Of a stretch of DNA of 64,000 nucleotides, positions 17,246-64,000 are shown in pieces. Made by a program: the position numbers and the translations under genes. The stretch spans positions 62,001 through 126,000 of the forward strand of contig JAPDFW010000116.1 of NCBI GenBank assembly GCA_028826165.1, written 5' to 3'. The DNA is from Anaeramoeba ignava BMAN. Lineage: Eukaryota; Protista; Anaeramoebae. Positions within the stretch are counted from its first letter, which is position 1, and the number at the start of each line of letters is the position of its first letter. Under the pieces are notes generated by a model, which was not told where the DNA came from, ran no database searches, and saw only the letters and a list, made by a program, of their open reading frames with translations.

Positions 17246-17331
17246 TTATCTTTTTTCTTTTTTTCTTTCTTTCTTTCTTTCTTTCTTTTCAAAAACAAAA
17301 AAATGAATTTCAAATCCAAAATTTTTTTAAA

Positions 17332-18035
17332 AAATGAAAATAGATTTAATTTAATATTTAATTTATAAATCAATTTAAAAATATAATTTAATATTTAATT
17401 TTATTATTAAAATAATAATTTATTGTTTTAGATTTAAATATTTTCTTTATTTAAATATTTAACATATAAATATAAAAAATGAGAATAGATTTAATTTAAT
17501 ATTAAAATTAAAATTAATTTAAAAATATAATTTCTAAATTAATTTTATTATTAAAATATTAATTTATTGTTTTTAGATTTAAATATTTTATTATTTAAAA
17601 ATATTTAACATATAAATATAAAAGAATAAAAATAGATTTAATTTAATATTTAATTTATAAATTAATTTAAAAATATAATTTAATATTTAATTTCATTATT
17701 AAAATAATAATTTATTGTTTTAGATTTAAATATTTTATTATTTAAATATTTAACATATAAATATAAAAATAAGAATAGATTTAATTTAATATTTAATTTA
17801 TAAATTAATTTAAAAATATAATTTAATATTTTAATTTTATTATTAAAATGATAATTTATTGTTTTAGATTTAAATATTTTATTATTTAAATATTTAACAT
17901 ATAAATATAAAAAATGAAAATAGATTTAATTTAATATTCAATTTATAAATCAATTTAAAAATATAATTTAATATTTAATTTTATTATTAAAATAATAATT
18001 TAATGTTTTAGATTTAAATATTTTATTATTTAAAA
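17332..18035. repeat. Tandem repeat of a ~145-bp unit, about 5 copies
   Basis: TAGATTTAATTTAATATT recurs at 17341, 17486, 17633, 17776 and 17921. Confidence 0.9.
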
Positions 18036-18421: not shown

Positions 18422-21400
18422 ATGGATAATAATAATAATAACCAAATTCAAAATGCAAATCAAAATCAAAATGAAAATGAAATGAAAAATTTAGAAAAAA
18501 AAGTAACAAAAAATTTAATTAAAAATTATTCAAACCTTTTAAATGGAAATTCATTTAAAGATTTTTCAATTTTTGTTGAGAATAAATCAAATCCTTTTGA
18601 AATTAAAGTTCATAAATCAATTTTATCTTCAAGATCTTCTTTTTTTAATGAGTTTTTAAAGGGCAAGAATCATCTCTTTATTTCTTTAAATCAATTTAAT
18701 AAAAAGAAATGGAATCAATTTTGAGTTATATTTATTATGGAAATATTTCTTTTGAGAATCAAGAAAATCTTATTCAATTATTAGAAATTTCAATTTATTT
18801 TAAATTAAATTTATTGAAAGAAATTATTCAAAAAAAAATTTTAAATTCAATTAATTATTCAAATTTTTTCCAATTTTTATTCCAAAATCGAAATTTAAAT
18901 TCAAATGAAATTGAAATAAAATGTTTTGAATTAATAAATCAAAATTTTTCCCAAATTCAAAATAATGAGAATTTATTCAATTTAACTAAAGAAGAAATTA
19001 TCAAATTTATTCAATTTAAACAAGAAAAAAAAGAAATTTTTCAATTTGATTTTTTTCAATTTTTAAATAATTGGATTGAAAAAAGAATTGAAAAATTAAA
19101 AGGAAAGAAAGAAAAAGAAAGAGAAATTGAAAAGAAAAGATTATTTCATTCTTTTTTTTCATTATTTGATAAAGATTCAATTTCAAAACAAGATTTTGAT
19201 AAATTAAAACAATTTGATATTTTTCTTCCAAAATCTTTTTTAATTGAAAACAAAGAGAAAGAAATTGAAGAGAATCAAAAAGAAATTGAAAACAAATTTA
19301 TTCAAGAGAATCAACAAATGAAAATTGAAATTGAAGAAAAAGATAAGGAAAACCAACAAATGAAACCTATTTTTGATAAATATCAACAAAAATATCAAAA
19401 ATATTTGGAATTTGAAAAGAAATTAGAACCAATTAAAACCAATTTTCCTCAATTTTCAGAAACAAGAATTATTACAGAAGAAGAATATGCTAAGAAATTA
19501 CAAGAATGGATAAATGATAATGATTTTTTTTCTAAAATGAAAAAAGGATTTTCAACAAAAAGAGATGGATTTGATTGTGAAAATTGGCATAAAGCAGTTG
19601 ATGGGAAAGGAAAAACATTAGTTATTATCAAAACAAAAGATAATTTTATTTTTGGAGGTTTTACTCAAGTTGGATGGACAAATGATAAATCAAAATGGAG
19701 AGAAGAAGATAGAAATAGGGATGATGGATTTATTCCAGATTCAAATGCATTTATTTTTTCATTAAGAAATGATAAAGGAGATAGAAAACCAGAGAAGTTT
19801 ACAATTAGAAAAGAACAAGAAGAATATGCAATTTTTTATAATTTAGAGGTTGGTCCAACTTTTGGATGTAAATATAAATAATTTATATTTAATAAATATT
19901 TATTATTATAATTAAAATTAAATTAATAAATAATTCAAAATATTAATATAATAAATAATATCATTATTTCAATTTAAAATAAAATTAATTTTAAATTAAA
20001 TTATTATTAATTATTATTAAAATTAATTATTTATCTTTATTAAAATAGTTCGTAAATAATTTATATTTAATAAATATTTATTATTATAATTAAAATTAAA
20101 TTAATAAATAATCCAAAATATTAATATAATAAATAATATTATTATTTCAATTTAAAATAAAATAAATTTTAAATTAAATTATTATTAATTATTATTAAAA
20201 TTAATTATTTATCTTTATTAAAATAGATAGTAAATAATTATATTTAATAAATATTTATTATTATAATTAAAATTAAATTAATAAATAATCCAAAATATTA
20301 ATATAATAAATAATATTATTATTTCAATTTAAAATAAAATTAATTTTAAATTAAATTATTATTAATTATTATTAAAATTAATTATTTATCTTTATTAAAA
20401 TAGATGGTAAATAATTTATATTTAATAAATATTTATTATTTATAATTAAAATTAAATTAATAAATAATCCAAAATATTAATATAATAAATAATATTATTA
20501 TTTCAATTTAAAATAAAATTAATTTTAAATTAAATTATTATTAATTATTATTATTAAAATTAATTATTTATCTTTATTAAAATAGCTGGTAAATAATTTA
20601 TATTTAATAAATATTTATTATTTATAATTAAAATTAAATTAATAAATAATCCAAAAATATTAATATAATAAATAATATTATTATTTCAATTTAAAATAAA
20701 ATTAATTTTAAATTAAATTATTATTAATTATTATTAAAATTAATTATTTATTTTTATTAAAAATAGATAGTAAATAATTTATTATTTAATAAATATTTAT
20801 TATTATAATTAAAATTAAATTAATAAATAATCTAAAATATTAATATAATAAATAATATTATTATTTTAATTTAAAATAAAACAATTTTAAATTAAATTAT
20901 TATTAATTATTATTAAAATTAATTATTTATCTTTTATTAAAATAGTTCGTAAATAATTTATATTTAATAAATATTTATTATTATAATTAAAATTAAATTA
21001 ATAAATAATCCAAAATATTAATATAATAAATAATATTATTATTTCAATTTAAAATAAAATTAATTTTTAAATTAAATTATTATTAATTATTATTAAAATT
21101 AATTATTTATCTTTATTAAAATAGATTGTAAATAATTTATATTTAATAAATATTTATTATTATAATTAAAATTAAATTAATAAATAATCCAAAATATTAA
21201 TATAATAAATAATATTATTATTTCAATTTAAAATAAAATTAATTTTAAATTAAATTATTATTAATTATTATTCAAATTAATTATTTATCTTTATTAAAAT
21301 AGATTGTAAATAATTTATATTTAATAAATATTTATTATTATAATTAAAATTAAATTAATAAATAATCCAAAATATTAATATAATAAATAATATTATTATT

Positions 21401-21650
21401 TAAATTTAAAATAAAATTAATTTTAAATTAAATTATTATTAATTATTATTAAAATTAATTATTTATCTTTATTAAAATAATTATAGCTGATATTTTTTTC
21501 ATCTTCACTTTAGCAACTGGTTATTCAAATTTTGGTCTTAGTTATAATCTACCTAATGGAATTGAATGTGAAACAGATGAAGCTAAAAGTTATTTAGCTG
21601 GTTCTTTTAATAAATGGAAAGTTGATGAAGTTGAGACTTATTTCATTTAA
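18422..21650 (+). CDS. BTB/POZ - coiled coil - TLDc protein; large exon 18422-19867 (probable 1-nt error near 18705), up to eight 3-nt micro-exons, terminal exon 21487-21650
   Basis: BTB (FKDFSIFV..IKVHKSILSSRS.FF; ILSYIYYG). TLDc (RDGF...WHKAVDGKGKTLVIIKT..FIFGGFT; AFIFSL; GPTFG). Terminal exon reads DIFFIFTLATGYSNFGLSYNLPNG..SYLAGSFNKWKVDEVETYFI*. Confidence 0.85.
19868..21486 (+). repeat. Tandem array of nine near-identical 174-181-nt GT..AG introns separated by eight 3-nt candidate exons (TTC 20049, ATA 20227, ATG 20404, CTG 20586, ATA 20767, TTC 20946, ATT 21125, ATT 21303)
   Basis: Every junction reads ...TTTATTAAAATAG|NTN|GTAAATAATT...; the triplet is the main site of substitution between units. 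Confidence 0.9.
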
Positions 21651-23158: not shown

Positions 23159-24942
23159 TTAATTATTAAATTTATTAATTAATAAATCAAATAAATTTGG
23201 ATTTGTTTGATTTAATTGAAAATAATCAATTCCTGTTTCTAATTCATCAATTATTTCTTGTGTAATTTGAATTTCATCTTTAATTTGATTTGAATAAATC
23301 CAATATTCAAATATTTGAAATGATTTATTACTTAATTCACTATAATCTGTAACTTTATTTGATTTATCATTTGTTACAGATAAAAACATTCCTCGATATA
23401 ATTCACTTCTCATTATTAATATTAATTTAGGAAATTTATATTGTTTTTCTTTTCTTTCAATTATAAAATCTTTTTCATTTTCATTTAAATAAATTCTTTT
23501 AATTGTTTCTTCAATTTTTTCATTTGAATTTATAATTTCTTTAATTTCAGAATATAATTTTGGATTTATTATTCTGTTTGAATAAATCATTTCAAATATT
23601 TGATTTGATTCTTTAATTGATTTTTTTGAAATAATTTCTTGAAGTTTTTCAATTTCATTTTGATTTAATCTGTATTTCAATATTAATTTATGAGCTTCAA
23701 TTATTTCTCCATTTTCGGTTTTAAATGAAATATTACAAAATTCTTTTCTTCTAAATAATTTTATCAAATCTTCTTCAAGATTGGAAAAAGAAGAGGAGAA
23801 TAATAAAGAAATGAATTTCTAAATCCACAAGAAATATGATAATTAGAAATATTTTCATTAAATCTTAATTTAGGAAGTTCAATTTGAATTGGAATTAATT
23901 GATCTTTTATATCTCTAATTCCTAATTGACCATGTTCATTATTTCCAAATACAATTAATTTTGAATTGGAAGTTAAAATCAAAGTATGATCATTTCCAAC
24001 AGAAAAATCAATAATATTATCATTTTCAAATAAAGATGATTTGATTTCAGTAAATTCATAAATATTTTCATATTCATTTTTGCCAAGTCCATTACATGAA
24101 TAATTTCCACATGAATAAAGTTTTCTTTTTGGATTTTGATTTTGATTTTCATTTTCAATCAACATTATTGAATGAAAATATCCAGATTGAATATCAATTA
24201 TTTTACCTTTTGGAATATTTTGTATTTTGGTTAATTTTTTGATTTTTATTTCTTCTTCTTTTTTTGATTCTCCTAATCCAAGTTGTCCAAATTGATTATA
24301 GCCGCATCCAAATAATTCTTGATTTGAATTCAAAAGAAAAACATGATTTGAAGAATTTCCTGAAAATATTTTAGAAACATTTTTCATCATTAAAATTGGT
24401 TTTTCTGTTTTTTTAAGTGTTTCAGAATCAAATCCAAGTTCACCATAATAATTAGAACCAATTCCATAAACATTTTGATTTGAAGTTAATAAATAAATTG
24501 AAAAAGCTCCAGAAACAATATCTTCAATTATTCTATCATTTGTATCTTCAATTAATGATGAAATATTGATAAATTTATTTGGATTTTTTGGATTAATATT
24601 TTTTCCTTTGGCAAATACATTTCCTTCTATTGTTAAAATAGCTTCATTATAACCACCAACAGTTACTTTTTGAATATTTTCTTCAATTTGGATTTCTTCA
24701 GGATTTTGATTTGAATATTGCTTATTTAAATATTCTATTGCTTTTCCATTTTCAAAAAGGAAAATTGTTGAAAAATAACCTGATGAAATTTGTTTAATTT
24801 GTTTTTCATTTTCATTTTCATTTTCATTTTCATTTTCATTTTCATTTTCAAATTTAAATTGAATTGGTTTTGTTATTTTATCTGGTTTATTTTTGAAAAG
24901 TTTTGGATTTTCATTTAAACCAAAAAATAAACAATCATTCAT
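23159..24942 (-). CDS. RCC1-repeat + tandem BTB protein, copy 1; split by a 1-nt deletion near 23793 (pseudogene or assembly error)
   Basis: Collinear with copies 2 and 3. The + strand reads AAGAAGAGGAG here versus AAGAAGGAGGAG in the intact copies, splitting ORFs 24942-23764 and 23767-23159. Confidence 0.85.
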
Positions 24943-25039
24943 TTTTTGAAAAAGTAAAAAAATGAAAAAATAAATTTTGGATTTTTAATTTTGATTTTTA
25001 ATTTTAATTTTAATTTTAATTTTGATTTTAATTTTAATT

Positions 25040-26812
25040 TTAATTTTGATTTTGATTATTAAATTTGTTAATTAATAAATCAATTAAATTTGGATTTGTT
25101 TGATTTAATTGAAAATAATCAATTCCTGTTTCTAATTCATCAATTATTTCTTGTGTAATTTGAATTTCATCTTTAATTTGATTTGAATAAATCCAATATT
25201 CAAATATTTGAAATGATTTATTACTTAATTCACTATAATCTGTAACTTTATTTGAAGTATCTTCTGTTACAGATAAAAACATTCCTCGATATAATTCACT
25301 TCTCATTATTAATATTAATTTTGGAAATTTATATTGTTTTTCTTTTCTTTCAATTATAAAATCTTTTTCATTTTCATTTTCATTTAAATAAATTCTTTTC
25401 ATTGTTTCTTCAATTTTTTCATTGGAATTTATAATTTCTTTAATTTCAGAATATAATTTTGGATTTATTATTCTGTTTGAATAAATCATTTCAAATATTT
25501 GATTTGATTCTTTAATTGATTTTTTTGAAATAATTTCTTGAAGTTTTTCAATTTCATTTTGATTTAATCTATATTTCAATATTAATTTATGAGCTTCAAT
25601 TATTTCTCCATTTTTGGTTTTAAATGAAATATTACAAAATTCTTTTCTTCTAAATAGTTTTATCAAATCTTCTTCAAGATTGGAAAAAGAAGGAGGAGAA
25701 TAATAAAGAAATGAATTATAATTTCCACAAGAAATATGATAATTAGAAATATATTCATTAAATCTTAATTTAGGAAGTTCAATTTGAATTGGAATTAATT
25801 GATCTTTTGTATCTCCAGTTCCTAATTGACCATGTTCATTATTTCCAAATACTATTAATTTTGAATTGGAAGTTAAAATCAAATTATGATAATCTCCAAC
25901 AGAAAAATCAAGAATATTATTATTTTCAAATAAAGATGATTTGATTTCAGTAAATTCATAAGTATTTCGCTTTTTGTCAAGTCCATTACATTCATAATCT
26001 CCACATGAATAAAGTTTTCTTTTTGGATTTTCATTTTCATTTTCATTTTCAATCAACATTATTGAATGAAAATATCCAGATTGAATATCAATTATTTTGC
26101 CTTTTGGAATATTTTGGATTTGTGTTAATTTATGGATTTCTTCTTCTTTTTTTGATTCTCCTAATCCAAGTTGACCAAAATTACTCCAACCACATCCAAA
26201 TAGTTCTTGATTTGAATTTAAAAGAAAAACATGAAGTGAAGAATTTCCTGAAAATATTTTAGAAACATTTTTCATCATTAAAATTGGTTTTTTTGTTTCT
26301 TTAAGTGTTTCAGAATCAAAACCAAGTTGACAAAAAAAATTATCACCAATTCCATAAACATTTTGATTTGAAGTTAATAAATAAATTGAAGTGTATCCAG
26401 AAACAATATCTTCAATTATTCTATCATTTGTATCTTCAATTAATGATGAAATATTGATAAATTGATTTGGATTTTCTGGATTAATATCTTCTCCTTTGGC
26501 AAATACATTTCCTTCTATTGTTAAAATAGCTTCATTTTCATAACCAACAGTTACTTTTTGAATATTTTCTTCAATTTGGATTTCTTCAGGATTTTGATTT
26601 GAATCTCTTAAATATTCTATTGCTTTTCCATTTTTAAAAAGGAAAATTGTTGAAAAATAACTTGATGAAATTTGTTTAATTTGCTTTTCATTTTCATTTT
26701 CATTTTCATTTTCATTTTCAAATTTAAATTGAATTGGTTTTGTTATTTTATCTGTTTCATTTTTGAAAAGTTTTGGATTTTCATTTAAACCAAAAAATAA
26801 ACAATCATTCAT
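25040..26812 (-). CDS. RCC1-repeat beta-propeller + BTB protein, copy 2 (590 aa, intronless)
   Basis: RCC1 blades (FGCG.SNFGQLGLG, SVGDYHNLIL..FGNNEHGQLGTG). BTB motifs (FCNISF..IEAHKLIL; KDFII..FPKLILIMRSELYRGMF). Confidence 0.92.
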   Translation of the reverse strand: MNDCLFFGLNENPKLFKNETDKITKPIQFKFENENENENENEKQIKQISSSYFSTIFLFKNGKAIEYLRDSNQNPEEIQIEENIQKVTVGYENEAILTIEGNVFAKGEDINPENPNQFINISSLIEDTNDRIIEDIVSGYTSIYLLTSNQNVYGIGDNFFCQLGFDSETLKETKKPILMMKNVSKIFSGNSSLHVFLLNSNQELFGCGWSNFGQLGLGESKKEEEIHKLTQIQNIPKGKIIDIQSGYFHSIMLIENENENENPKRKLYSCGDYECNGLDKKRNTYEFTEIKSSLFENNNILDFSVGDYHNLILTSNSKLIVFGNNEHGQLGTGDTKDQLIPIQIELPKLRFNEYISNYHISCGNYNSFLYYSPPSFSNLEEDLIKLFRRKEFCNISFKTKNGEIIEAHKLILKYRLNQNEIEKLQEIISKKSIKESNQIFEMIYSNRIINPKLYSEIKEIINSNEKIEETMKRIYLNENENEKDFIIERKEKQYKFPKLILIMRSELYRGMFLSVTEDTSNKVTDYSELSNKSFQIFEYWIYSNQIKDEIQITQEIIDELETGIDYFQLNQTNPNLIDLLINKFNNQNQN

Positions 26813-26924
26813 TTTTTGAAAAGAAAAAAAATGAAAAAATAAATTTTGGATTTTAATTTTGATTTTAATTTTGATTTTAATTTTAATTTTAATTTTAATT
26901 TTAATTTTAATTTTGATTTTAATT

Positions 26925-28691
26925 TTAATTTTGATTATTAAATTTATTAATTAATAAATCAATTAAATTTGGATTTGTTTGATTTAATTGAAAATAATCA
27001 ATTCCTGTTTCTAATTCATCAATTATTTCTTGTGTAATTTGAATTTCATCTTTAATTTGATTTGAATAAATCCAATATTCAAATATTTGAAATGATTTAT
27101 TACTTAATTCACTATAATCTGTAACTTTATTTGAAGTATCTTCTGTTACAGATAAAAACATTCCTCTATATAATTCACTTCTCATTATTAATATTAATTT
27201 TGGGAATTTATATTGTTTTTCTTTTCTTTCAATTATAAAATCTTTTTCATTTTCATTTAAATAAATTCTTTTCATTGTTTCTTCTATTTTTTCATTTGAA
27301 TTTATAATTTCTTTAATTTCATAATATAATTTTGGATTTATTATTCTATTTGAATAAATCATTTCAAATATTTGATTTGATTCTTTAATTGATTTTTTTG
27401 AAATAATTTCTTGAAGTTTTTCAATTTCATTTTGATTTAATCCATATTTCAATATTAATTTATGAGCTTCAATCATTTCTCCATTCTTGGTTTTAAATGA
27501 AATATCACAAAATTCTTTTCTTCTAAATAATTTTATCAAATCTTCTTCAAGATTGGAAAAAGAAGGAGGAGAGTAATAAAGAAATGAATTTTGCCAACCA
27601 CAAGAAAGATGATAATTGGAAATATCTTCATTAAATCTTAATTTAGGAAGTTCAATTTGAATTGGAATTAATTGATGTTTTGTATCTCCAGTTCCTAATT
27701 GACCATGTTCATTATTTCCAAATACTATTAATTTTGAATTGGAAGTTAAAATCAAATTATGATCAAATCCAACAGAAAAATCAAGAATATTATTATTTTC
27801 AAATAAAGATGATTTGATTTCAGTAAATTCATAAGTATTTTCATATTCATTTTTATCAAGTCCATTATTTAGATAATATCCACATGAATAAAGTTTTCTT
27901 TTTGGATTTTGATTTTCATTTTCATTTTCATTTTCATTTTCAATCAACATTATTGAATGTTTAATCCCACATTGAATATCAATTATTTTACCTTTTGGAA
28001 TATTTTGGATTTGTGTTAATTTTTGGATTTCTGTATTTTTGTTTATTGATTTTCCTAATCCAAGTTGACCAAAATTACTCCAACCACATCCAAATAATTC
28101 TTGATTTGAATTTAAAAGAAAAACATGAATTGAAGTATTTCCTGAAAATATTTTAGAAACATTTTTCATCATTAAAATTGGTTTTTGTGTACTTAGAAGT
28201 GTTTCAGAATCAAAACCAAGTTGACAAAAAAAATCATCACCAATTCCATAAGCATTTTGATTTGAAGTTAATAAGTAAATTGAACTATATCCAGAAAAAA
28301 TATCTTGAATTATTCTATCATTTCTATCTTCAATTAATGATGAAATATTGATAAATTGATTTGGATTTTTTGGATTAATTTCTTCTCCTTTGGCAAATAC
28401 ATTTCCTTCTATTGTTAAAATAGCTTCATTTTCATTACCAACAGTTAGTTTTTGAATATTTTCTTCAATTTCAATTTCTTTAAGATTTTCACTTAAATAT
28501 TCTATTGCTTTTCCATTTTCAAAAAGGAAAATTATTCGTTCTTCGTTTGATGAAATTTGTTTAATTTGTTTTTCATTTTCATTTTCATTTTCATTTCCAA
28601 ATTTAAATTGAATTGGTTTTGTTATTTTAATTGATTCATTTTTTAAAAGTTTTTGAAATTGATTTAAACCAAAAAATAAACAATCATTCAT
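26925..28691 (-). CDS. RCC1-repeat beta-propeller + BTB protein, copy 3 (588 aa, intronless)
   Basis: Same architecture as copy 2, head-to-tail with ~100-bp spacers. Confidence 0.92.
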   Translation of the reverse strand: MNDCLFFGLNQFQKLLKNESIKITKPIQFKFGNENENENEKQIKQISSNEERIIFLFENGKAIEYLSENLKEIEIEENIQKLTVGNENEAILTIEGNVFAKGEEINPKNPNQFINISSLIEDRNDRIIQDIFSGYSSIYLLTSNQNAYGIGDDFFCQLGFDSETLLSTQKPILMMKNVSKIFSGNTSIHVFLLNSNQELFGCGWSNFGQLGLGKSINKNTEIQKLTQIQNIPKGKIIDIQCGIKHSIMLIENENENENENQNPKRKLYSCGYYLNNGLDKNEYENTYEFTEIKSSLFENNNILDFSVGFDHNLILTSNSKLIVFGNNEHGQLGTGDTKHQLIPIQIELPKLRFNEDISNYHLSCGWQNSFLYYSPPSFSNLEEDLIKLFRRKEFCDISFKTKNGEMIEAHKLILKYGLNQNEIEKLQEIISKKSIKESNQIFEMIYSNRIINPKLYYEIKEIINSNEKIEETMKRIYLNENEKDFIIERKEKQYKFPKLILIMRSELYRGMFLSVTEDTSNKVTDYSELSNKSFQIFEYWIYSNQIKDEIQITQEIIDELETGIDYFQLNQTNPNLIDLLINKFNNQN

Positions 28692-57025: not shown

Positions 57026-60000
57026 TTAAATTTTTTTGAAAAACTTATTAAAAAGCCATCTGAGTGAAATAAAAATGAAAAGAAGGAAGATAATTGTAGT
57101 AATCAATTCTTTCCAAACGAATTTATCAGCATTTTTCATTTTCTTGATAATTGATCTTTCTTTTTTTGCAAAATGAAGAGGAAATGAATTTGGATTGATC
57201 AAATAAAGTTGAGAAACTTCTTGAAGTTGTTTAAGTTGTAAATAATTAAGAGTTTGGTCAACTTTATCAAAATATAAACCTTTGACAAATTGTTGAATAA
57301 TTTTATAGCTTTTTTGAGTTATATCTTGAAAAGAATTGCTTTTAATTGATATTTGGTTATTATTATTGTTATTATTATTATTGTTATTTTCATTTGAATT
57401 TTCATTTGAATTTTCATTTGAATTTTCTTCAATTTGATCAAAATAATCACTTCTTGCAAATAAAATCAATTTGTGAACTAAAACTTTGTTTTTTTCAACA
57501 ATAATTTGAAAATCTTTAGTCGAATTATCTGAATATAATTTGGCGAAATCTTTTGAAAAATTGCTTAAATTTTGTTGATAATCACTTGAGGGTAAAGTGG
57601 TTCCAATTTCTTTTGTGATTTGAATAAGTGAACTAAGATAAAGAGGATCAAGAACTCCTGAATAAATGTATTTCATGAATTCTTTGACAATTATTAAAGT
57701 ATATTTTTTCAAAACAGAAAGTGTTTTTTCTAGTTTTTTTTCTCCAATTCTTGCTTTAAGAATCAATGAATGTGATCTTGTTGTTCCGTTTGAACAATCA
57801 ATATCAATATCTGTATATGCTTGATCAGTAAATAATTCATAGAGGTCTTGGCCAAGTGGTGAATATTGTTTAATTTGCGTTCTTTTTGAAACATTATGCA
57901 ATGAATTTAATGCTTTCTTTGAATATTTTTAAATAAATTTTTTAAATAAATTTTTAAATAAATTTTTAAATAAATTTTTAAATAAATTTTTAAATAAATT
58001 TTTAAATAAATTTTTAAATAAATTTGTAAATAAATTTTTAAATAAATTTATAAATAAATTTGTAAATAAATTTTTAAATAAATTTGTAAATAAATTTTTA
58101 AATAAATTTTTAAATAAATTTGTAAATAAATTTGTAAATAAATTTATAAATAAATTTTTAAATAAATTTTTAAATAAATTTTTAAATAAATTTTTAAATA
58201 AATTTTTAATTTCAAACAGTTCTGATTTTTTCATCTTCTGTTGTTAAATATAAAATTCGTAAAGTATCTAATGAACAATTTTGAGTGCAAGCATATATTA
58301 ATGCATGTTCATTTTGTTTCTAAAGTTTTTTATATATTTTTAAATTTAAATTTAAAATTAATTTAAAATTAAAATTAAAATTAATTCTAAACATTAGATG
58401 ATTCTAAAGGACATCCTGCAACAACTAAAGCATAAATAATTGCAGAATCAACTTGTTTTTGAATTCCAATATGTAAAGCTCGAAATCCCTTTCAAATTTC
58501 AAATTTTTAATTTTTAATTTTTAATCTTTAATTTTTAATTTTTTAATTTTTAATTTTTAATCTTTAATCTTTCATCTTTAATTTCAAATTTTTAATTTTT
58601 AATTTTTAATATTTTTAATTTTTAATTTTGAAAACAAAATACAAAAATAATTTCAAATATTTTTTTTAATATTTAATTTTAATTTCTTAAAAATTTTTAA
58701 TTTTTAATATTTACAACCTAATTTTGAAAACAAAAATACAAAAATAAATAGCATTTCTTAAAAAAATTTCTTATCAAAAATAGCAAACATTCTAATTTTA
58801 AAAAAATAAACAAATTTTAAAATGAAAATTAATAATAAAAATAAAAATAATAATTATTAACATTTTTCGAATAAACATTTGCTCCTTGTTCAATTAAATA
58901 ATTAACAATTTCTATTTTTCCTGAAATTACTGCATTATGTAATGGTGTATATCCCTAAATTTCAATTAAAAAAACAAGAAATGAAATTAAAAACAATTTT
59001 TTTTAAAAGAAAAATTTAAATCAATTTTACTTCCTGAAAAAAATATAAATAATTAAATTGAAAATTAAATTAAAATTAAAATTAAAAATTACTTTCTAAA
59101 AATTAAAACAAAGTTAAAAATTAATTTTTTTTTGTAACAAAATAAATATATAAATATATATAAATATATATAAATTATTTTTCAAACATTTTTCAAATTT
59201 ATTTTTGCTCCATTTTCAATAAGAAGTTTTATAACTTGTACATCTGCTCCATGTAAACATGCAAAATGTAAAGGTGAATTTAACTGAATAAATAGAAATT
59301 TAAAATTAAAAAGAAACTAAAAAGAAACCTTTTTTTTTCGTTAAACAATTTTTACATTCTTTTTTCAAAATGAAAAAAATATAAGAAGATTTTTTGTTTA
59401 ATTAAAAAATTTTTACATTCTAATAAAATTAAAATAAATTTAAAATAAATTGAATGAAAATCAAATTATATTTTGAAAAAATTTTACATCAACAATTCTT
59501 GGATCAGCAGAACCTTCAATTAATACTTGAAAACTTTCTAATGAAACTAAACTAGTGCAAGCTTTATGAAGAGAAGTTTGATTCTTTAAAGAAAATAATT
59601 TTTTTATAAATTTTTCCAATTAAAATTAAAATAACAAATTTTACTGACTAAAGAATATCAAAAAGAAAAATATAAATTTCCATTTTGAAAAAAAAGAATG
59701 ATTTAAATTACTGACTAAAAAATTAAAATTAAAATTAAAATTAAAATTAAAATTAAAATTAAAATTAAAATTAAAATTAAAATTAAAATTAAAAATTAAA
59801 ATTAAAATTAAAATTAAAATTAAAATTAAAATTAAAATTAAAATTAAAATTAAAAATAAAATTAAAATTATTTTTGTTTTCAAACATCTGGTTCATTTGG
59901 ATTTGAACCTAATGTAATCATCATAATTAATGCTTCTGGTGTTGGTTTATTTTTACATAAAATATGAAGAGGGATTTCTTGCTATTAATTATTAATTAAT

Positions 60001-60942
60001 TATTTTTTTTAAAAACAGAAAAAAAGTTTAAAAAATTTGAAAGAATAAAATCAAAAAATACATTCTAAATAAATTAATAAATAAAACAATTAATATAAGA
60101 AATAGAAAAAGAAAACGATTAATTAATAAAGATTACATACTAAAATTTATTTATAATTTTAATAATAAATTTATTTACAATTTTAATAATAAATTTATTT
60201 ATAATTTTAATAATAAATTTATTTATAATTTTAATAATAAATTTATTTATAATTTTAATAATAAATTTATTTATAATTTTAATAATAAATTTATTTATAA
60301 TTTTTAATAATAAATAAATTTATTTATAATTTTAATAATAAATTTATTTATAATTTTAATAATAAATTTATTTATAATTTTTAATAATAAATTTATTTAC
60401 AATTTTAATAATAAATTTATTTTATTTTAATAATAAATTTATTTACAATTTTAATAATAAATTTATTTTTTTAATAATAAATTTATTTACAATTTTAATA
60501 ATAAATTTATTTATAATTTTAATAATAAATTTATTTATAATTTTAATAATAAATTTATTTATAATTTTAATAATAAATTTATTTACAATTTTAATAATAA
60601 ATTTATTTACAATTTTAATAATAAATTTATTTATAATTTTAATAATAAATTTATTTACATTTTTTAAAACAACATCAGAACCGGCAAAAATAAGTGCACG
60701 TAAAATTTCAGGAAGAATATTTTGAACTGAACAAGCATAATGAAGTATGGTTTCATTCTTAATAAAAAATAAAGTAATTAAGAAAACACGTTTTTTTTTA
60801 TTATTTAATTTTGATTTTAATTTTAATTTTAATTTTAATTTTGATTTTTTACTCCAGAATTTGATAAATCAAGTTTTTCTTTTAAAATTTGTTCAACTTT
60901 AAATAAATCATTTAAAGCAACTGCTTCTCTTAATCTTTGCAT
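57026..60942 (-). CDS. Ankyrin-repeat + tandem BTB + C-terminal TM protein; main exons 60942-60853, 60757-60659, 59981-59886, 59583-59488, 59283-59188, 58954-58862, 58488-58393, 58319-58218, 57916-57026, plus ten 3-nt micro-exons
   Basis: One ankyrin repeat per phase-0 exon (NETILHYAC, QEIPLHILC, NQTSLHKAC, LNSPLHFAC, GYTPLHNAV, GFRALHIGI). BTB motifs (YTDIDI..SHSLILKAR; KDFQI..VHKLILFARSDYF). Terminal ITTIIFLLFIFISLRWLF helix. Confidence 0.88.
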
Positions 60943-61061
60943 GATAAAAATAGAAAAAAGTAAAAAGAAAAAAAAGAAAAAAAATGATTTCAAAAAAAAA
61001 AAAGAAAAAATCTTTATTTTCAATTTTCGTTTTTCTCATTTTATTTTTTCATTAAAATTCA
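60943..61061. promoter_or_regulatory. Probable compact bidirectional promoter between the ankyrin-BTB gene and IDI1
   Basis: Only 119 bp separate two divergent ATGs, with an A-rich half switching to a T-rich half. Function is inferred from position only. Confidence 0.45.
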
Positions 61062-61814
61062 ATGGAGAATTTAGATAAAACCCAAATGGAGTTTATGAAT
61101 GATGAATACTGCATTGTTGTGGATTTAAATGATAAACCACAACGTTCTGAAACTAAAATCAAATGTAAAAAAAATTTGATCTAAAAATAAAAAAAAAAAT
61201 CTTAAAAAAAAATCTTAAAAAAAAAAATCAAAAATATTCGGAATGAAAATAATTGAAATAAAGGCCATCAAGAAAATATTCTTCACAGAGCTTTCAGTGT
61301 TTTTATTTTCAACACAAAGAATGAATTATTACTTCAAAAACGTTCAGAAAATAAAATAACATTTCCCAATGTTTGGACTAATACATGTTGCTCTCATCCT
61401 TTATATAATCAACAAGAACTCCAAGAGAAAAATCAAGAAGGAGTTAAAAGAGCAGCAATTAGAAAGCTAGAGCATGAATTAGGAATTCATAATGAAGTAA
61501 AATGGGAAGAAATTATTTTCATAACACGCATTTATTACGAAGCAAAATTTGATGATAAATGGGGAGAACATGAAATTGATTATATTCTTTTGATTCATAA
61601 AGATGTGAATGTTCAGATTAACTACAACGAAGTGTCAGAGATTAAATATGTGAATGAGGATGAGTTGAAAAAAATTATTGAAGAAGGAAATGTTTCACCT
61701 TGGTTTAAATTAATTTCAGAAAAATTTTTGTTTGATTTATGGGAAAAATTAAAAGAAAAAGATTATGATTTTAATAAAGGAAATGATTTTTCAAAAATTA
61801 TTCATTTAAAATAA
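61062..61814 (+). CDS. IDI1: Isopentenyl-diphosphate delta-isomerase type 1; exons 61062-61164 and 61264-61814
   Basis: KCH..LHRAFSVFIFN..LLLQKRS..KITFPNVWTNTCCSHP, AAIRKLEHELGI, WGEHEIDYIL, SPWF. Confidence 0.95.
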
Positions 61815-62203: not shown

Positions 62204-64000
62204 TTAGATTTTCTTTGTAGCAAAGAACCAATCTTTTGCATCAACTGATTTTTGATGAGTTCTGACTTCAGCCATTTCAACTGTGTTTGGAGGAGGAACA
62301 ATAACATCTTCACCTGGTTTCCAATTTGCTGGAGTTGCAACTTTGTTTTTGTCTGATGTTTGCATTGCAACAAGAAGTCTCATGATTTCATCCATGTTTC
62401 TTCCATTAGAAAGTGGATAGTAAATAATTGCTCGAATAATTGCTTGTGGATCAATTATGAATACTGCTCGAACAGTTTGTGTTTTACTTGTGGATTGATG
62501 AAGCATTCCAAATTTCTTAGCAACATTCATATCTGAATCACTTTTTAATTTTTTATCCGATTTTAATTTTAATTTTAATTTTAATTTTAAATTGAATTTT
62601 AATTTTAATTTTAATTTTAATATTAATTTTGATTTTAATTTTAATTTTGATTTTAATTTAAATTTTAATTTAAATTTTAATTTTAATATTAATTTTAATT
62701 TTAATTTTAATTTTAATTTTAATTTTAATTTTAATTTTAATTTTAATTTTAATTTTAATTTTAATTTTAATTTTAATTTTAATTTTAATTTTAATTTTAA
62801 TTTTAATTTTAATTTTAATTTTAATTTTAATTTTAATTTTAATTTTTAATTTTAATTTTAATTTTTAATTTTAATTTTAATTTTAATTTTAATTTTAATT
62901 TTAATTTTAATTTTAATTTTAATTTTAATTTTAATTTTAATTTTAATTTTAATTTTAATTTTGATTTTAATTTTGATTTTGATTTTGGATTTTGATTTTA
63001 GTTTTAATTTTAATTTTAATTTTAATTTTAATTTTAATTTTAATTTTAATTTTAATTTTAATTTTAATTTTAATTTTAATTTTAATTTTAATTTTAATTT
63101 TTAAATTTAATTTTAAATTTACGCAATAACAGGGAATGTGATTTGAACTTTTTCCATATCTTTATATTTAATCTTTTCTTCAATAGTTCTAACCCATGCA
63201 ATATGACTGAAATTACTATCAATACTTAATCCAATTAATTCACAATTAAGTTTTTGGAAATCTTTATGCATAGTAGCAAAAGTCATAAATTCAGTTGTGC
63301 AAACAGGTGTAAAATCTATTTAATTTTATTTTTGATTTTAAATTGATTTTGATTTTAATTTTAATTTTAATTTTAATTTTAATTTTGATTTTGATTTTGA
63401 TTTTGATTTTAATTTTAATTTTAATTTTAATTTTGATTTTAATTTTGATTTTGATTTTAATTTTAATTTTAATTTTAATTTTAATTTTAATTTTAATTTT
63501 AATTTTAAATTTTAATTTTAATTTTAATTTTAATTTTAATTTTAATTTTAATTTTAATTTTAATTTTAATTTTAATTTTAATTTTAATTTTAATTTTAAT
63601 TTTAATTTTAATTTTAATTTTAATTTTAATTTTAATTTTAATTTTGATTTTAATTTTAATTTTAATTTTGATTTTAATTTTAATTTTAATTTTAATTTTA
63701 ATTTTGATTTTAATTTTAATTTTAATTTTAATTTTGATTTTGATTTTGATTTTGATTTTGAATTTAATTTTAAATTTAATTTTGATTTAATTTTGATTAT
63801 TAAATTGAATTTTAATTTTAATTTTGATTTTAATTTTAATTTTAAATATAATTTTATTTTAATTGTTGTAAAGGAGAATAAAAGTTGTAAAAAAATTAAA
63901 TTAAATTACCTCCAGGATGTGAAAACAAAATAACCCATTTTCCTGAAAAATGTTGTGGAAATTTAATTGGTCCCATTGTAGTTTCTGCTTCAAATTCAGG
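62204..64000 (-). CDS. Peroxiredoxin, Prx6/TDXH prokaryote-like; exons >64000-63910, 63315-63123, 62540-62204 (5' end outside the window)
   Basis: WVILFSHPG|[10 protein letters not shown] active site, [52 protein letters not shown]. Both introns are (TTTTAA)n-filled. Confidence 0.92.

Follow-up and report, generated by a model that had tools for sequence, protein, structure and literature searches.

Tandem near-identical introns parted by candidate single-codon exons in a BTB-TLDc gene family of Anaeramoeba ignava

Results

The window, by which we mean the whole stretch of 64,000 nucleotides analysed here, comes from the 42.8 Mb, 147-contig genome assembly of Anaeramoeba ignava, and contains a BTB-BACK-TLDc gene on the plus strand (NCBI protein P0001) and an ankyrin-repeat and BTB gene on the minus strand (Table 1). 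The BTB-TLDc gene encodes a product of about 535 residues with a polar, N/Q-rich N-terminus and a BTB domain (Pfam) upstream of the TLDc domain. The identity of the latter is supported by Pfam TLD (E 9e-16), an AF2 model with pLDDT 95, and a Foldseek match to 6r82 (E 6e-9, TM approximately 0.7).

Exon 1 of this gene is broken by a one-base frameshift at a run of five A (18701-18705). The frameshift is probably a long-read homopolymer error, because 17 paralogs have six A at this position and three other paralogs share the short run; the assembly is nanopore-based (PMC11550330). We rejected the frameshift as proof of a pseudogene. The NCBI model P0001 bridges the site by omitting about 470 nt (window 18667-19138) and so loses most of the BTB-BACK region, an omission that is probably an annotation patch.

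Table 1. Positions of the exons and introns of the two genes in the window
Feature	Position	Strand	Remarks
Exon 1, BTB-BACK-TLDc gene	18422..19867	+	Ends GPTFG plus one base (phase 1); Pfam BTB and TLD; NCBI protein P0001
First intron of array	19868-20048	+	Six extra bases after donor, as usual for first units
3-nt exon 1, TTC	20049..20051	+	AG..GT flanks
3-nt exon 2, ATA	20227..20229	+	AG..GT flanks
3-nt exon 3, ATG	20404..20406	+	AG..GT flanks
3-nt exon 4, CTG	20586..20588	+	AG..GT flanks
3-nt exon 5, ATA	20767..20769	+	AG..GT flanks
3-nt exon 6, TTC	20946..20948	+	AG..GT flanks
3-nt exon 7, ATT	21125..21127	+	AG..GT flanks
3-nt exon 8, ATT	21303..21305	+	AG..GT flanks
Seven internal introns (span 20052..21302)	20052-20226, 20230-20403, 20407-20585, 20589-20766, 20770-20945, 20949-21124, 21128-21302	+	174-179 nt, about 97% A+T
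Last intron	21306-21486	+	Six extra bases before acceptor, as usual for last units
Terminal exon	21487..21650	+	Final 53 TLDc residues and stop; agrees with paralog C-termini
Ankyrin-repeat and BTB gene	57029..60942	-	Same device as TLDc array; internal control
Ankyrin pair 1, TAT, AAT	60139-60137, 60064-60062	-	AG..GT flanks, phase 0
Ankyrin pair 2, TCA, TCA	59714-59712, 59647-59645	-	AG..GT flanks, phase 0
Ankyrin pair 3, AAT, AAT	59419-59417, 59358-59356	-	AG..GT flanks, phase 0
Ankyrin pair 4, AAA, GAA	59095-59093, 59033-59031	-	AG..GT flanks, phase 0
Ankyrin pair 5, AAT, GTT	58791-58789, 58717-58715	-	AG..GT flanks, phase 0

Between exon 1 and the terminal exon, the original prediction had placed nine GT..AG introns of almost identical sequence, with eight triplet spacers of five different values between them, and this arrangement was confirmed: the units measure 174-181 nt, all nine begin with GTAAAT and finish with ATAG, and the triplets and their order are those predicted. 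Within 19868-21486, GT and AG dinucleotides occur only at unit ends, apart from AG/GT overlapping the spacers. Pairs of units differ by 0-6 substitutions, and TRF describes the array as 9.0 copies of period 178 at 96%. It was likewise correct that all 256 subsets of the spacers are free of stop codons in this array; they encode 177 distinct peptides, and local translation gives FP, YT, YA, SA or YS for single inclusions and FHNADIHYS for full inclusion, as proposed. The predicted resemblance between spacers 4-6 and the first bases of the last exon proved to be at chance level (P 0.13 under a strict and 0.51 under a loose definition), and a special meaning for the match was rejected.

The array is one member of a large set. 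The TLDc part has more than 150 scored paralogs and the BTB-TLDc family more than 500 candidate matches, whilst the array unit itself has at least 902 matches in the genome, of which the 150 best were listed, at 97-100% identity. Among 45 readable paralog loci we found 29 arrays, many of them partial, with 0 to 19 or more spacers, and every array with exon 1 in view begins at one and the same TLDc codon. Arrays with both ends in view have 0, 1, 1, 1, 2, 2, 6, 6, 8, 8, 8 and 19 spacers. The 3-nt length holds for 181 of the 194 spacers, all of them phase 1-1, and the remaining 13 can be read as a triplet with a lengthened or shortened homopolymer run. Across the array paralogs, first introns usually carry six additional bases after the donor and last introns six before the acceptor; one locus, L038, has a single intron with both six-base extras and no spacer. 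At two other loci, L029 and L040, the last-type intron is absent and a spacer-like triplet continues directly into a terminal exon like that of array-free paralogs, a layout for which the ancestral state, intron loss and a chimera are possible readings.

Units diverge by 2.4% within arrays and 2.8% between arrays, compared with 13% for the adjacent exon 1 and about 50% per base for the spacers. The contrast between units and exon 1 indicates that units have been exchanged between genes or have spread very recently. Older arrays lie behind TLDc genes on contig C1, where the junction motif and the same spectrum of spacers are found at irregular spacings of about 60-230 nt; the junction thus outlives the homology of the intron bodies. 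Ten double-length gaps show decayed junctions. The older C1 arrays at 1057922-1073178 and 942329-942797 (minus strand) belong to tandem genes with related spacer order and irregular intron lengths. Our analysis supports tandem duplication of an intron plus 3 nt as the source of the units, as had been proposed, and adds that the array belongs to a genome-wide family with units common to several genes, and that the same device is present in ankyrin genes. A metagenome scan returned 49 distant loci, none of them Anaeramoeba-like and none array-bearing. A tree built from 70 TLDc sequences lacked the resolution to place array gain and loss in sequence.

The spacers bear the marks of coding sequence. 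The motif WWWWTAG-N3-GTAAAW occurs 1857 times genome-wide, compared with 171 and 193 occurrences at the control spacings of 4 and 6 nt; the reversed pattern, which has a different dinucleotide make-up, was set aside. In a genome of 80% A+T, the triplets of these 1857 motifs include TAA only 5 times and TAG once, but TGG 17 times. Of the 10 TGA triplets, no fewer than five belong to TLDc arrays and are out of frame there. Heterozygosity at the three spacer positions is 0.65, 0.25 and 0.69, against a mean of 0.027 for the intron bodies, with the caution that polymorphism extends to four C positions within the intron body (0.27-0.59). G accounts for 20 of 24,944 intron-body bases and for about 21% of spacer bases. 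The middle spacer base, which is the wobble position in phase 1, is T in 155 of 181 spacers (86% N-T-N). When spacers were compared with the codon-position composition of TLDc exons, phase 1 gave a lnL of -637, the other phases -808 and -750, and intron composition -1210; with distinct spacer types only, phase 1 remained best (-79 versus -93 and -88). Each spacer has the AG and GT flanks of a microexon with spliceable introns on both sides, and the intron ends are of the same type as those of the ankyrin-gene introns. Composition, stop avoidance and flanks together support the prediction that the spacers act as 3-nt coding exons and the units as introns.

The order of the spacers offers a view of how many might be included. 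In phase 1, a spacer that begins with AA, AG or GA forms a stop codon after T. In genomic order, none of the 12 stop-prone spacers follows T, against a shuffled mean of 3.3-3.6 (P 0.012); on ten distinct contexts, a small sample in which some contexts are related, P is 0.036. Single inclusion would produce a stop in 7 of 179 cases compared with a shuffled mean of 5.6, and thus shows no avoidance. Some subset of spacers makes a stop in 5 of 26 arrays, and all subsets are open in the other 21. Because stops are avoided when spacers are read in genomic order and are not avoided when they are taken singly, inclusion in order is favoured over free subsets and over the choice of one spacer. Freedom from stops in every subset holds for the window array but not in general; the proposed free use of all subsets is not supported as stated, nor is the proposed Dscam-like selection of one spacer, which shows no stop depletion. 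On the minus strand of contig C35 (351862-352619), AAT, AAC and AAT stand behind a 4-nt spacer, which implies a phase-1 stop or a local phase shift; this AAT-then-AAC case may break the in-order avoidance of stops.

NCBI models join the first donor to the last acceptor in nearly all array genes. Two models run exon 1 into the first spacer and end there, perhaps because of RNA hints or as a product of the gene finder. Exons this small are commonly missed by short-read aligners and gene finders (PMC8831610). Protein searches returned only A. ignava NCBI models and no transcript-derived sequence.

The ankyrin-BTB gene serves as an internal control. Its ten 3-nt exons (span 58715..60139) sit in unrelated introns, mostly of 58-92 nt, and each of five consecutive ankyrin repeats is followed by exactly two of them. 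Solved ankyrins (PDB) have a repeat period of 33 residues. The 31-residue exon at 58954-58862 corresponds to Pfam Ank positions 2-32 of 33, three other exons also stop at position 32, and the 33-residue repeat is complete only with both 3-nt exons, for example as N-K-E-G-Y-T-P-L-H. In the first and last repeats the same two codons lie inside a large exon, and the composition of the ankyrin 3-nt exons fits phase 0. This evidence from homology suggests that A. ignava does include consecutive 3-nt exons. The 3-nt pairs sit at the hairpin tips of the ankyrin repeats, which are used for binding.

The AF2 model of the TLDc domain places the insertion site in a turn that is flanked by a bridge at F136 and by the strand of residues 140-142. 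Loops of array-free paralogs reach 12 residues at this position, with 2-3 residues the commonest length, and a 12-residue loop is modelled as lower-confidence coil with the fold intact. Both the fold model and the loops of array-free paralogs support the predicted location of the spacers in an insertion-tolerant surface loop. Read in order, the spacers encode loops with many D, Y, F, N, I, V, S and G residues. Full inclusion in the longest array would produce a loop of about 21 residues, beyond the array-free maximum of 12.

Discussion

Our analysis indicates that the array is real, family-wide and very probably coding, and it is quite likely that the spacers reach mRNA in some form. Our best reading, which we hold to be about evenly poised between right and wrong, is that spacers are included in order and that the loop owes its diversity to intron-plus-codon units being duplicated, lost and exchanged. 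What we infer for inclusion in mRNA, the number of spacers included, the recombination mechanism and the role in binding runs as follows. The array would consist of real spliceosomal introns parted by one-codon, phase-1 exons, each of which would lengthen by one residue the turn that joins GPxFG to the following TLDc strand. Arrays may have been seeded by duplication of an intron along with the opening triplet of the exon that follows it, a route suggested by the identity of common spacers with the first triplets of terminal exons. Splicing would proceed in genomic order, taking in all spacers or contiguous runs of them, such that the loop of the window gene could be, for example, FHNADIHYS and not the annotated single S. 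The near-identical introns would provide handles for recombination and the diversity would lie mainly in the DNA: unequal crossing-over and conversion could add, remove and swap whole codons in frame, and units could move between paralogs. Selection would hold the wobble base as T, so that most reshuffled orders are stop-free, and vary the two bases that change the amino acid. Such a device would probably serve a large BTB protein family (adaptors of the Cullin-3 type) by varying a binding surface.

Several other explanations of the arrays deserve consideration. Combinatorial splicing, in which spacers are variably included or skipped to give many loop isoforms per gene (the 177 peptides of the window array), could coexist with ordered inclusion, and leakiness is to be expected of 3-nt exons with identical flanks. 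The N-T-N spacers never form a stop in any order, and every subset is open in the window array and in most of the arrays. However, the N-T-N pattern is equally explained by robustness to reshuffling in the DNA, five arrays whose genomic order is open contain stop-making subsets, and the length of the ankyrin repeat requires both of its 3-nt exons; we regard this explanation as unlikely, though of appreciable probability. A mutually exclusive choice of the Dscam type, with exactly one spacer per transcript, would yield the 2-3 residue loop that is commonest amongst array-free paralogs, some of which read like single-spacer products (FP in L024, FH in L036). Nevertheless, stops under single inclusion are as numerous as after shuffling, the introns have sufficient length to allow joining of adjacent exons, and a G-free unit offers little for docking or selector pairing, all of which makes such a choice very improbable.

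It is also conceivable that splicing removes the array entire, as a single long intron, in which case the units would be a satellite that spreads within an intron by gene conversion and the spacers would be relics of exon starts. The NCBI models do skip the array, the L038 locus with one intron and no spacer demonstrates that a one-residue loop exists, units are homogenized between loci, ten junctions have decayed, and the common spacers ATG, CTG, GTT and ATT equal the first triplets of terminal exons. Yet, as the bodies decay to A+T, the spacers retain their G and C and show variation at the two replacement positions, they avoid stops, the junction motifs on C1 outlive body homology, and an ankyrin gene of the same organism needs its 3-nt exons; we consider removal as a single intron improbable. 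An expanded repeat produced in assembly, with spacers generated by error, could be suspected from the nanopore-based assembly and the visible homopolymer errors, but errors would not yield wobble-phased codons, avoidance of stops, non-repetitive ankyrin pairs or irregular old arrays, and an artefact is hardly credible.

The arrays can be set against a number of known systems. Introner elements are many near-identical spliceosomal introns in one genome, but they are dispersed at new sites, whereas the A. ignava copies at the loci read stand in tandem at a single codon within one gene family, and the spacers are not a repeated target duplication. In Dscam1, tandemly duplicated alternative exons of a binding domain encode half or whole domains, of which one is chosen; a single choice is disfavoured in A. 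ignava by the stop test, although all single inclusions are open in the window array taken alone. Plant and animal microexons (1-15 nt) include examples of 3 nt and smaller; annotation usually overlooks them, and they may lie next to one another (PMC8831610). The adjacent microexons described there are pairs in conserved genes, in contrast to the tandem runs of 8 to 19 or more variable single codons in A. ignava. Schistosoma MEGs have exons of 3-81 bp, 10-20 per gene, and generate variants by alternative splicing of central exons (bioRxiv 10.1101/2023.06.21.545858). Both systems have runs of very short, frame-symmetric exons. MEG exons, however, are mostly of about 15 bp, make up most of a secreted protein and are separated by introns of up to 5 kb; those of A. 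ignava are 3 nt long, lie between short clonal introns common to several genes, and would contribute 8 codons to a single loop of a folded intracellular domain in the BTB-TLDc protein of the window.

The ROCO-LRR and NB-ARC-TPR proteins of Ectocarpus are candidate receptors whose binding surface is diversified by shuffling of repeat exons under diversifying selection (PMC3341825). The shuffled unit is a whole repeat in Ectocarpus and one codon in A. ignava. By analogy, the A. ignava arrays may work most like Schistosoma MEGs and, in purpose, resemble the exon shuffling of Ectocarpus. The TLDc proteins NCOA7, OXR1, TBC1D24 and mEAK-7 bind V-ATPase (PMC8804929, PMC13543948) and share the fold of the A. 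ignava domain, which is fused to BTB and varied in the GPxFG-side loop. Our literature search found no description of single-codon exon arrays between cloned introns, and neither micro-exons nor TLDc came up in a search of the genome paper with its supplements.

Were the spacers to be included, the spliceosome of A. ignava would join 8 to 20 consecutive 3-nt exons, which exceeds anything found in our literature search. The genome would hold some 1,700 candidate single-codon exons, and those checked are absent from gene models. The series of 0, 1, 2, 6, 8 and 19 spacers, together with young and old arrays, may document how tandem duplication gives rise to micro-exons in nature. Such a device could vary both the length and the sequence of a loop without a frameshift, and it is seen in two unrelated families of binding domains. 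A broader scheme, possible but on balance doubtful, is a general codon-by-codon diversification of binding loops, in which common intron-plus-codon cassettes of the TLDc and ankyrin adaptor families are reshuffled in DNA and variably spliced to give each cell or lineage a recognition repertoire, perhaps directed at symbionts or intruders. With a generated repertoire demonstrated, the arrangement would count as categorically new.

Additional observations

Other arrays in the genome resemble phase 0, with periods near 75 and 107 nt: C1:409308-413057 (minus strand), C1:1796390-1796940 (plus strand), C25:12805-13266, C28:3451-3931, and C57:8925-9507, 436531-436696 and 593649-595383. Their triplets resemble whole codons in having A or T as the last base (28 of 28 on C1:409308-413057), and several of them have the common order CCA/GAA/AAA/CCT. 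Four motifs each with a constant 6-nt spacer occur at C70:137225-137676 (ATCAAA) and C67:402788-403788 on the minus strand (GATGAT), and are possibly arrays of two-codon exons.

Further repeats were observed in the window. A 144-bp AT-rich tandem repeat of 4.9 copies (17328-18034) lies immediately upstream of the BTB-TLDc gene, and one intron of the ankyrin-BTB gene is inflated by a 24-bp tandem repeat (60143-60664). Tandem ORFs at 23159-28691 (minus strand) have repeats in common, and one short motif recurs unchanged at 23346, 25239 and 27118; we interpret them as a local gene triplication. Judged by eye, an AhpC/peroxiredoxin-like C-terminus lies on the minus strand at 61040-61760, and an isopentenyl-diphosphate isomerase-like gene, opposite strand, at 62205-62600 (minus strand).
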